This document shows positions 17,001 through 20,000 of a DNA stretch of 64,000 nt, one piece after another. Within the stretch, counting starts at the first letter, position 1. The number at the start of each line of letters is the position of its first letter. The DNA is taken from positions 62,001 through 126,000 of the forward strand of contig NIVC01000272.1 of the NCBI GenBank assembly GCA_002269645.1. The letters run 5' to 3'. Below the pieces are notes generated by a model. The model made no database searches, was not told where the DNA came from, and saw only the letters and a list, made by a program, of their open reading frames with translations. This DNA comes from Macrostomum lignano (lineage: Eukaryota). A program made the position numbers and the translations under genes.

Positions 17001-20000
17001 GACAGCTCACAGGGCCGCCTTGGAAACAGAAATTGAGTAACCGTAGCGTCAATTTAGGACAGAAGCCTCCCCGCACTGGGAAATCCCCGAGGACCCGCCA
17101 GAGAGAGGCGCCTTCACCGCCCCCCCCCCCCCCCCCCCCCCCTGACAGCCGGGGTGGCACGGAAAGTGCGCCTAAAAATCCAACCAGAAATGTCTGTTCG
17201 ACTCTTTCTGGACGATTATGTTTCCAAAGCAGAGTTGCAAGCGAGCTGAAGCAGAAGACGCGGGTGAAACACGATTGCCGATTTGGCGATGCCGGATGTG
17301 CCCGCGGCGGGATTAGGGGGTTAGGGGGGGGGGTCAATTTTTCGATCGCGTAAAGCATTCGGGTCATAAAAGCATCTGATGCGTTGAAAACATTGGTCCC
17401 TTCCGAAGTGGTTAAGCTTGTGCTCATGTCTGGATTTTGGTCAATTTAATTTGATATATGAGGCTTAGAGCTGTGCATGCACATTTTAGTGTCACTCTGT
17501 ATGCTGCATGAATATAAATTTTCTATGCTATTGCCTCTATTTTTTACCATTTTGTTGCCTAACGGTCACTTTAGTAATGCCAAGCCTCTGTTCGTAGTTA
17601 CCCTGCGACCTTGAACCCCCAATTCTGGACTTCGATTGAGGTGCTAACTGGCTACTTCCTGAACAATTGCTGATCAAATTCCACCGTCTCCTTCTCAACT
17701 AACTCCGCGCGATTAAAGCTCAATGCTAACCTTGGCCGAAATGAACCCGTCATCTCCAGGTACTGGTCGTCCCTGCGCAACCTGGTGATCTCCCTGCTCA
17801 ACTCGATGCGGTCGATCATCTCCCTGCTGTTCCTGCTGTTCCTCTTCATCCTGATCTTCGCCCTGCTCGGCATGCAGCTGTTCGGCGGAGAGTGAGTGCC
17901 GGAGAGCTAGTACCAGTAAATGAGCACCCTAGTTAGGTAGTTTGGGTTGTTCTCGCCAATGAGGGCAATCCCCAGGGCGCAGAGAGAGTACCTGCCTGCC
18001 CTGTGTTGAGAAGGTCAGGTCTTGAAACAGTGACTTGAAAAAAAAACGGAAAAATGATAGAGGCGTCAAAGCCCAAATATATTCGATCCTCAAAGTGGAA
18101 CTCCACTAGCTCCTACTGACCATTTACAGGGGATAGAAAGTGAGCAGGGATCAGGATAGGAAGAGCTTTATCACCTCAATCGATCGCTTAAAACCTCCAG
18201 CATGCAAAACGGCTCTAATGTTGTCCTTGCAGGTTCAACTTTCCGGAGGGCCGGCCGGCTCAGAACTTCGACACATTCGTCAAAGGCCTGCTCACGGTGT
18301 TCCAGGTGGGAAGGCGCTTCGCCTCGTGCGCCCCAACTTTTTAAATATTCATGGGAAAATCAATTTCACCTGCTGGCTTAGAGATCCGGGCGGGTGGGAA
18401 TGAAAGACGGCAATACCTGGTTGAGTTGTTTTGAACTTTTAGCTGAGATTGTGCTTTGCTCCGTTGTTTTTTCAAAACTCACCAGTCCAATAGTGAGTTG
18501 CAATGACCCCATGCAGCAAGAACTTCATCAACTGGTTGACGACATTGATGCGTAGCCAGGTGAGGGGGCAAGTGGGGGCCGTGGCCCTCCCCTATCGATA
18601 GGCCCTAACTTTAAAACTGATGGCCTTCTTTGCAAAGTGACGGAAATTTTGCATGCTCGGTGCAAAACATTACTGAATAAGCGCTGGCATTGCTTAACTT
18701 GCTAATTATGTTAATTGCTAATAGATTGCCCCTACGGTAGTTTTGCACAGTTTGTTTTTTGCTGTAAATTTGATATTTCCTTTCTATTAATTTACATTTG
18801 GGTGCAAAACTCTTTAAGAAGCATTTTTAATTGTATAAGAGTACAAAGTTAATAATACTGTCTGAATTAATAGTATAAGTATATGCAGAAAGCAGGTTTA
18901 TTAACAGCTCAGGTTAGAAAAAGCGTCAGAAAATGTGAGAGCGCTTCTGAGCGCTACTGACAGACAGACAGACAGAAAGACAGACAGACAGACAGACAGA
19001 CAGACAGACAGACAGACAGACAGACAGACAGACAGACAGACAGACAGACAGACAGACAGACAGACAGACAGACAGACAGACAGACAGACAGACAGACAGA
19101 CAGACAGACAGACAGACAGACAGACAGACAGACAGACAGACAGACAGACAGACAGACAGACAGACAGACAGACAGACAGACAGACAGACAGACAGACAGA
19201 CAGACAGACAGACAGACAGACAGACAGACAGAAGGACAGACAGTAAACCTCCCCATTTGGCACGGGACGGACCAGGTGCTGACCAGCGAGGACTGGAACA
19301 TGGTGATGTACGCGGGCATTCGCTCGCAGCGGACTGCCAACTCGTCCGGGATGTGGGCCGCGGCCTACTTTGTGATCCTGCTGCTCTTCGGCAATTGTAT
19401 CCTTTGCAAGCCACCGGGATTTCGCGAGGGGGTCCCAGAGTTTGATTGACAGTTTGTGCTTTGTTACTGTGCTCTTAATGCAGCACGAGACTCCAGAGTT
19501 TTCAGTTGTACATGAACTACCAACATCGCATCCGCAATCCATGAAGTCCCGAATGCTTTCCCAGTTGTGTAAAAGTTTTTTTTTGACCAAGCTTCTGCAA
19601 ATGACTCGCATGCCTCTCTGCCGGCGATGCCCGGTCCCAAACTCAGGCTTCAACCTTTGCCCAAATATCCATGTCCGCCAGCATTTCCTGTCCGCTGGAA
19701 GACTGGATCAGCCCTGACATGGCTCATTTAAATCAGACGCTAATCGAATTGAGATAATAATTTGTTTATTCGTTCCACCGCGCCGCCCAGATTCTGACAG
19801 GAGAGGACTGGAACCTCGTGATGTACTATGGCATCAGGTCGCAGGGTGGGGTGGGCCAGGGCATGGCCTACGCCACGTATTTCATCCTGCTGGTGCTGTT
19901 TGGCAACTGTATCCTAGCAACAGCTGGCTTATTCAATTTTAATACATAGTTTATCACTTTTTTGTTTATTTCTTCACACTATTAAGCTTACTTTCGCTCT

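Follow-up and report, generated by a model that had tools for sequence, protein, structure and literature searches.

Tandem copies of a domain II pore exon, separated by a U2/U12 hybrid intron, in a Cav2 calcium channel gene of Macrostomum lignano

The stretch of the Macrostomum lignano genome considered here (64,000 nucleotides of contig NIVC01000272.1, assembly GCA_002269645.1, forward-strand positions 62,001 to 126,000; hereafter the window, within which positions are numbered from 1) carries, at 5006-32795, a gene for a Cav2-type, that is, non-L-type high-voltage-activated, calcium channel alpha-1 subunit in which the exon encoding the domain II selectivity filter is present as two tandem copies, 15a and 15b. 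The exons of a GenBank protein from the same species, BOX15_Mlig012532g2 (P0147), which was located with a long composite query, match the window at 100% identity, and its exact spliced alignment to the window yields 29 exons up to 32795, with the pore exon as number 15. The contig of that protein, NIVC01000272.1 of assembly Mlig_3_7, agrees with the window without a mismatch over 41 kb. The channel protein reconstructed from the locus, 1602 residues long, has the layout of a Cav alpha-1 subunit, with four ion-transport repeats (Pfam Ion_trans in four stretches, 853 bits) followed by GPHH (99 bits) and IQ (Ca_chan_IQ, 57 bits) domains. It also contains a beta-subunit binding motif and an EEEE filter that reads TMEGW, T(S/G)EDW, TGEGW and TGEAW in domains I to IV, with an Asp after the domain II Glu. 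The assignment to Cav2 proposed in an initial annotation of this DNA is borne out by this domain set and by identities of 60-67% to Cav2 proteins of many phyla versus 46-49% to Cav1; the top relatives in the PDB are human Cav2.2, Cav2.3 and Cav2.1. Channels of the Cav2 class trigger the release of transmitter, and few animal sequences are as conserved as that of their pore.

The segment of interest begins with exon 14 (18233..18305, plus strand, as are all features described below; placed by spliced alignment of P0147), which encodes the end of the domain II S5-P turret and the P1 helix and ends in a U2-type donor, CAG/gtgggaagg (a slash marks the splice site). An (ACAG)n microsatellite of about 70 units (18960..19244) ends about 30 nucleotides (nt) before the acceptor of exon 15a and fills the space in which a polypyrimidine tract would be expected. 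Exon 15a (19276..19396; cag/GTG...AATT/gtatcc) is 121 nt long, is entered in phase 0 with 1 nt over, and encodes 40 residues; exon 15b (19791..19908; cag/ATT...AACT/gtatcc) has the same phase, is 118 nt long and encodes 39. The remainder of the S6 helix of domain II (IIS6) is encoded by exon 16 (21035..21135, placed by spliced alignment), the acceptor of which, aag/AC, has no polypyrimidine tract (pyrimidine fraction 0.47). Each copy of exon 15 encodes the end of the P1 helix, the selectivity filter, the P2 helix, a short outer loop and the first half of domain II S6. The copies are adjacent, lie 394 nt apart, and have AG and GT at all four boundaries; 24 of their 39 aligned residues are identical (blastp within the window, E = 5e-16), and within the window each is the other's only relative for this segment. 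Homology, shared phase and splice boundaries together confirm the earlier description of 15a and 15b as a tandem alternative pair.

At the level of residues, 15a reads TSEDWN with the loop RTANSSG, and 15b reads TGEDWN...SQGG. The Ser codon of 15a (AGC, 19285-19287) and the adjacent filter Glu codon (GAG, 19288-19290; together 19285..19290) align to Gly662 and Glu663 of human Cav2.2 (PDB 7MIX), and the corresponding position of 15b is Gly (GGA, 19800-19802). An N-S-S sequon (AAC TCG TCC, 19339..19347) lies in the P2-S6 loop of 15a; the loop of 15b has no sequon, and an N-Y-T that both isoforms form across the exon 15/16 junction falls inside S6. The initial annotation had reported the Ser in place of a conserved Gly together with an N-x-S pattern in 15a, and a canonical TGEDWN without a loop sequon in 15b, and its residues and coordinates are exact. 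The outer loop of 15a is in addition one residue longer and polar, containing Arg and three residues with hydroxyl or amide side chains, and it lacks the Gly-Gly that normally follows SQ. Five of the first 10 positions of S6 are altered in 15a, and neither exon contains Cys.

The histories of the two copies appear to have been unequal. Compared with the exon of Echinococcus granulosus, which is single-copy, 15b shows 72.5% identity and 15a 57.5%, and across 16 taxa the corresponding ranges are 59-79% for 15b (69-79% among the Cav2 taxa) versus 48-69% for 15a. Because 15b is thus the nearer to the single-copy exons of other taxa, it is judged on these identities to be the conserved, ancestral form and 15a a fast-evolving derived copy. 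Between the two, 45 of 117 aligned bases differ, a nucleotide identity of 61.5%, with 0.40 nonsynonymous (dN) and 1.38 synonymous (dS) substitutions per site, constraint estimates that are rough as they use 39 codons only. The differences at the first, second and third codon positions stand at 11:3:18 when five loop codons are excluded, and a simulation of neutral evolution that started from 15b and applied 0.5-0.7 substitutions per site preserved the reading frame together with the splice motifs and 24 of 39 residues in fewer than 1 in 20,000 trials. This bias in codon position, together with the rarity with which neutral drift retains frame, residues and splice sites, argues that selection has kept both copies. 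When the 15a reading frame was used to scan metagenomes, no orthologue of 15a came up, only annelid- or mollusc-like single exons, and a protein search with a 142-residue domain II segment including 15a, which appeared to list matches up to about 1.75 times the query length, gave no close relative and none with the 15a loop. The nearest fragments (P0003 and P0060) come from unrelated metagenome animals and have single, 15b-like exons; the protein searches returned no second Cav2 protein or isoform from M. lignano.

The Ser that distinguishes the filter of 15a occupies a position that appears close to invariant. Among the matches returned by three protein searches, Gly precedes the domain II Glu in 112 of 117, 88 of 89 and 103 of 103 Cav1 and Cav2 motifs. 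TSEDWN nevertheless occurs elsewhere: in a single-copy nematode Cav2 exon, with codon AGT (Logan contig SRR10842865_50909; L014 921-1253), in a Cav1-like exon that also has a U12 donor (metagenome contig Ga0049107_10001085; L013 3001-3129), and in one further protein fragment (P0066). Ser at this site is evidently, from these sequences, a rare, recurring and viable alternative. The same nematode gene also reads TTAEGW in domain III. A separate peculiarity of this motif is found in oysters, the Cav2 proteins of which (Crassostrea virginica, C. angulata and Ostrea edulis; P0262-P0277, P0281 and P0284) have TGADWN in every listed isoform, so that the domain II filter Glu is replaced by Ala; all other motifs recovered in that search, of 103 proteins, are TGEDWN.

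It might be argued that the Ser never reaches the protein, either because base 19285 is an assembly error or because AGC is recoded to Gly (IGC) by adenosine-to-inosine editing. AGC is a single transition away from GGC, and Ser-to-Gly is a typical recoding by such editing. Set against this, the Ser is not an isolated change, as 15a differs from 15b at so many other bases, and shuffled sequence folds at least as well as the RNA around the Ser codon (z = +1.9). No complementary arm that could form an editing duplex over the codon was found. Absence of the Ser from the protein is accordingly given very little credence here.

The introns that surround the two copies are of different spliceosomal types. 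The 5' splice site of 15a (19397..19405) is of U12 type, GTATCCTTT, and matches 9 of 9 positions of the consensus used for scoring (PMC6259924). It opens the 394-nt intron between the copies (19397..19790), which is a hybrid: its 3' end is of U2 type (pyrimidine fraction 0.74, ending in cag), and a U12 branch site is missing from it, as even the closest match to TTCCTTAAC has 3 mismatches. The acceptor of 15a is weak, with a pyrimidine fraction of 0.42 over positions -22 to -4. Exon 15b likewise has a U12-type 5' splice site (19909..19915), GTATCCT followed by AG, the sequence after the exon reading GTATCCTAG. A perfect TTCCTTAAC branch site (20996..21004) lies 31 nt upstream of the exon 16 acceptor; in the whole Cav2 gene perfect matches occur only before exon 2 and before exon 16. 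With a U12 donor, a perfect branch site and no polypyrimidine tract, the exon 15-to-16 intron has the features of a minor intron. The consensus sequences against which such introns were compared are RTATCCTT for the 5' splice site and TTCCTTRAC for the branch site. The overall layout is therefore a U2 donor at exon 14, then an intron with U12 donor and U2 acceptor, and then a U12 intron downstream.

Such an arrangement suggests how exclusive choice between the copies would be enforced. The U2 donor of exon 14 would pair with either the weak acceptor of 15a or the strong acceptor of 15b, and the U12 donor of whichever exon is chosen would then be joined to the single U12 branch site and acceptor before exon 16. 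Joining of 15a to 15b would be blocked, as neither spliceosome is expected to remove an intron that pairs a U12 donor with a U2 acceptor, and from the presence of this hybrid intron between the copies we infer that they are mutually exclusive. A frame shift with a stop would act as a second safeguard against double inclusion or double skipping. Inclusion of both exons leads to a stop at residue 754 and skipping of both to a stop at residue 666; joint inclusion and joint skipping each yield a non-functional message. A different kind of mechanism, competition between RNA structures of the docking-site and selector type, was also considered, and the inverted repeats found at 18306-21036 are short, AT-rich or of low complexity, none of them convincing.

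A precedent for the proposed mechanism is provided by exons 6a and 6b of JNK2 (MAPK9), in which exclusive choice by way of a U2-U12 hybrid intron has been demonstrated experimentally, with minigenes (Chang et al. 2007, PMC1874599; Letunic et al. 2002). In each gene a U2 intron precedes the pair, a U12 intron follows it, and the intron between the alternative exons is a hybrid whose 5' splice site is of U12 type and whose 3' end is of U2 type; in both the downstream exon has the stronger pyrimidine tract. They differ in that JNK2 is another gene in another phylum, and in that the arrangement in Macrostomum is known from sequence alone. What is new is the U2/U12 hybrid-intron architecture at the exon 15 pair of a Cav2 gene, which offers a clean non-vertebrate example of exclusivity enforced, if the mechanism holds, by such an intron.

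The U12 donor on which this architecture depends appears to be ancient. At the same position, a U12 donor (T/GTATCCTT) is found in seven annelid- or mollusc-like metagenome exons, and fish gene models read through the same donor as "GNCIL", giving mis-annotated proteins. Rat Cacna1c has minor introns 2 and 13 (PMC8767276). The minor intron after the domain II pore exon thus appears common to Cav genes of annelid- and mollusc-like animals and, as far as indirect evidence goes, to those of vertebrates. In Echinococcus the intron after this exon begins with GTAAGT and is of U2 type, and the minor intron has there, judged from that donor, been converted. As a separate matter, in the E. granulosus sequence (CM038612.1; L005), where the converted intron is at 16956, the stretch 307-1990 precedes the annotated start at 2001 and has U12 signals, with the donor ATATCCTTT at 307 and the branch site at 1959; the Echinococcus Cav2 model appears to begin after the true first exon.

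Expression of 15a is established by the gene model itself. BOX15_Mlig012532g2 uses 15a, and the Mlig_3_7 annotation to which it belongs was built with STAR, StringTie, TACO, BLAT and TransDecoder from RNA-seq and de novo transcripts only, with no ab initio prediction (PMC5730564). Because the model was built from RNA data alone, 15a is present in mature RNA and is expressed. The use of 15b in messenger RNA (mRNA) is predicted from the features of the exon itself. Taken together, the most probable account, held with reasonable though not complete confidence, is that an old tandem duplication of exon 15 gave rise to two mutually exclusive pore exons, that the choice between them is made through the hybrid intron, and that the channel containing 15a would remain Ca2+-selective with finer changes in its properties.

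Several observations weigh against this account. No 15b transcript was found, and GenBank has one isoform for the locus. The acceptor of 15a, without a pyrimidine tract and abutting a microsatellite, is odd for the exon used in the reference transcript. That same transcript is frame-shifted at exon 27b and may not be a productive mRNA. Finally, the distance of 31 nt from the branch site to the 3' splice site of exon 16 exceeds the roughly 10-20 nt typical of vertebrate U12 introns. With respect to the last point, the first intron of the gene (5230-5442) is an AT-AC U12 intron, GG/ATATCCTTT at its 5' end and cac/G at its 3' end, the branch site of which (TTCCTTAAC, 5405-5413) lies at a distance of 30 nt, yet it is spliced in the RNA-derived model; spacing of about 30 nt may be normal in M. 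lignano. The AT-AC intron in IS1 is conserved in Nav and Cav genes (PMC6259924), and because it is spliced here the minor spliceosome can be taken to be active in this animal. With respect to the first, the TACO isoform fraction of 0.75 drops minor isoforms, and alternatives with identical coding sequence were removed (PMC5730564), so that little can be read into the missing 15b isoform.

The lack of a 15b transcript, taken with a sole GenBank model that has 15a and a 90% cluster that has a single member, is what would be expected if 15a were constitutive and 15b an unused leftover of the duplication, with no splice switch at all. A relic would be expected to lose its functional features, whereas 15b retains an open frame, the better acceptor of the pair and a U12 donor, and shares 69-79% identity with Cav2 exons from other phyla even though synonymous sites between the two copies are saturated; a minor isoform would in any case be hidden by the TACO filter. 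An unused 15b is accordingly regarded as distinctly unlikely.

The converse, that 15b is the working exon and 15a minor or non-productive, with the gene model reflecting a choice made in transcript assembly or reads from a near-identical paralogue, draws on the weak acceptor of 15a and the (ACAG)n before it, on the frame-shifting acceptor at 30889 in the GenBank model, and on a genome assembly in which 180 Mb lie in blocks at least 95% identical to another and for which STAR was allowed 1000 multiple mappings (PMC5730564). This version is judged more improbable still: 15a bears the marks of coding constraint and its U12 donor is perfect over 9 nt, a paralogue at 95% identity or more would carry both exons, so that mis-mapping could not create the 15a junction, and the model also uses the derived copy of a second exon pair, 12b, which suggests a coherent isoform.

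If both exons are used, as the preferred account holds, the question becomes how the pores differ. Exon 15b would give the canonical pore and 15a a derived one, in which the backbone carbonyl of the Ser would line the filter just below the ring of Glu side chains. The backbone carbonyls of the two residues before the Glu form inner ion sites in this channel family. According to a reviewed alignment, residues that precede the high-field-strength site contribute the central and inner sites, and the Asp that follows the domain II Glu is conserved in all Cav channels and is likely needed for Ca2+ selectivity (PMC4436565). Both the filter Glu and this Asp are identical in 15a and 15b, so the high-field-strength residue is not switched; since both are kept, a large switch between Na+ and Ca2+ permeability is not expected, and channels with 15a are predicted to stay Ca2+-selective. 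They would more plausibly differ in conductance, divalent block, S6 gating or inactivation, or the surface of the outer vestibule.

The initial annotation had suggested instead that the pair might be a permeation or toxin-sensitivity switch, on the precedent of alternative domain II exons in invertebrate Cav3 channels. The exchange of the filter neighbour stands; a Na/Ca switch is not indicated, the filter Glu and Asp being unchanged. In its broader form, in which the exchange alters Na/Ca permeability or toxin sensitivity in the manner of Cav3 exon 12a/12b or NALCN exon 15a/15b, the proposal draws on the homology of the exon span to NALCN exon 15, on the position of the substituted residue in the lining of the filter, at the central and inner sites of the reviewed alignment, and on the extra Arg and added residue in the outer loop of 15a. 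It is nonetheless unlikely: besides the shared Glu and Asp, other repeats have residues other than Gly at this position, such as the Met in domain I of this same channel (TMEGW), Ser is found here in single-copy Cav genes elsewhere, and the turret that matters in Cav3 corresponds to exon 14, which is common to both isoforms.

The comparison with Cav3 in fact fares poorly as a precedent. What Lymnaea Cav3 exons 12a and 12b encode is the cysteine-rich S5-P turret, with the filter and P2 helix left untouched (Senatore et al. 2014, reviewed in PMC4436565), and although both cases concern alternative domain II pore-module exons of an invertebrate Cav channel, the Cav2 pair starts after the turret, at the end of P1, and is without Cys, the turret lying upstream in the shared exon 14. 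By analogy, the closest precedent is rather NALCN exon 15a/15b, described in Lymnaea and many invertebrates, in which mutually exclusive exons span the domain II pore helices and filter to proximal S6 (Senatore et al. 2013, PMC3557258). NALCN and Cav2 thus have in common tandem, mutually exclusive exons for the same segment of a four-domain channel. They belong to different gene families; the NALCN exons exchange the filter residue itself (E to K, EEEE versus EKEE), whereas in the present gene the Glu is kept and its neighbour changed, and here the derived copy is the upstream one. U12 signals are not known to have been described for NALCN. Splice-selectable pore loops are therefore already documented for NALCN and Cav3; a literature search found no report of alternative pore exons in Cav1 or Cav2, nor of the Macrostomum gene.

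The sequon of 15a had also been put forward as a gain of N-glycosylation. The pattern itself is present, as one of 10 N-x-S/T patterns in the reconstruction, and by alignment to Cav2.2 it lies in the extracellular P2-S6 loop, with x not Pro. Its Asn, however, is only 3 residues before the GMW that is aligned with the presumed start of IIS6 in 7MIX, and an acceptor Asn normally has to lie at least about 12-14 residues from membrane-spanning helices (the Nilsson and von Heijne rule). Because the Asn would be too near the membrane for the oligosaccharyltransferase to act efficiently, the NSS motif is probably not glycosylated.

Exon 15 is not the only duplicated exon of the gene. Exons 12a (15265-15377) and 12b (16058-16170), each 113 nt long, encode IIS3 through S4; 12a is 71% and 12b 58% identical to the single Echinococcus exon, 12a has a GC donor (AG/gcaagt), and the two are 59% identical in nucleotides (dN 0.45, dS 1.5). 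The RNA-derived model combines the derived 12b with 15a. A third pair, 27a (29982-30101, 120 nt) and 27b (30897-31043, 147 nt), encodes the IVS1-S2 loop and IVS2, with 27b resembling the ancestral form. In the GenBank model exon 26 is spliced to an AG that lies eight bases further upstream, so that the exon starts at 30889, and the resulting frame shift cuts the protein off after 1255 residues, without domain IV; the acceptor at 30897 would retain the conserved frame.

Diversification of an invertebrate Cav2 gene by mutually exclusive exon pairs is also known from Drosophila cacophony, the pairs of which reportedly lie in IS4 and the I-II linker rather than in the pore loop. The Macrostomum gene has an S3-S4 pair as well, but in domain II (12a/12b). 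Cacophony has two such pairs, and they are not conserved in vertebrates (PMC11828482).

The joint use of 12b and 15a invites a more far-reaching proposal, that together they build an alternative domain II which changes permeation or block, making this the first high-voltage-activated channel with a splice-swapped pore module, selected by competition between the major and minor spliceosomes. We consider this speculative and improbable; were it true, higher monovalent permeability or weaker block by Cd2+ or peptide toxins might, for example, be expected. Under the more conservative account, in which 15a channels remain Ca2+-selective, a constrained natural Gly-to-Ser substitution beside the domain II Glu, with the canonical form encoded in the same gene, would constitute a ready-made experiment on the role of this position in permeation and block. 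As M. lignano is tractable to transgenesis, ideas about both the pore and its splicing are testable in the animal itself.

Some further features of the window concern its repeats and its other genes. Long tandem arrays at 5550-8600, 21208-21700 and 24200-25700 lie within introns 2, 16 and 21 of the channel gene, and a fourth, at 33585-34925, lies downstream of the last reconstructed channel exon; these arrays give rise, in several frames, to long open reading frames that are spurious. A strong shift of GC skew is seen at 6-8 kb and again at 24-26 kb. Downstream of the channel gene, at about 43000-61000, are at least two genes resembling Cys-loop receptors, with paralogous exons, up to 77% identical, between about 43.0-44.3 kb and 51.6-60.8 kb. 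U12-like signals occur in this region too: two donors (45670, 48043) and two branch sites (49358, 52139).

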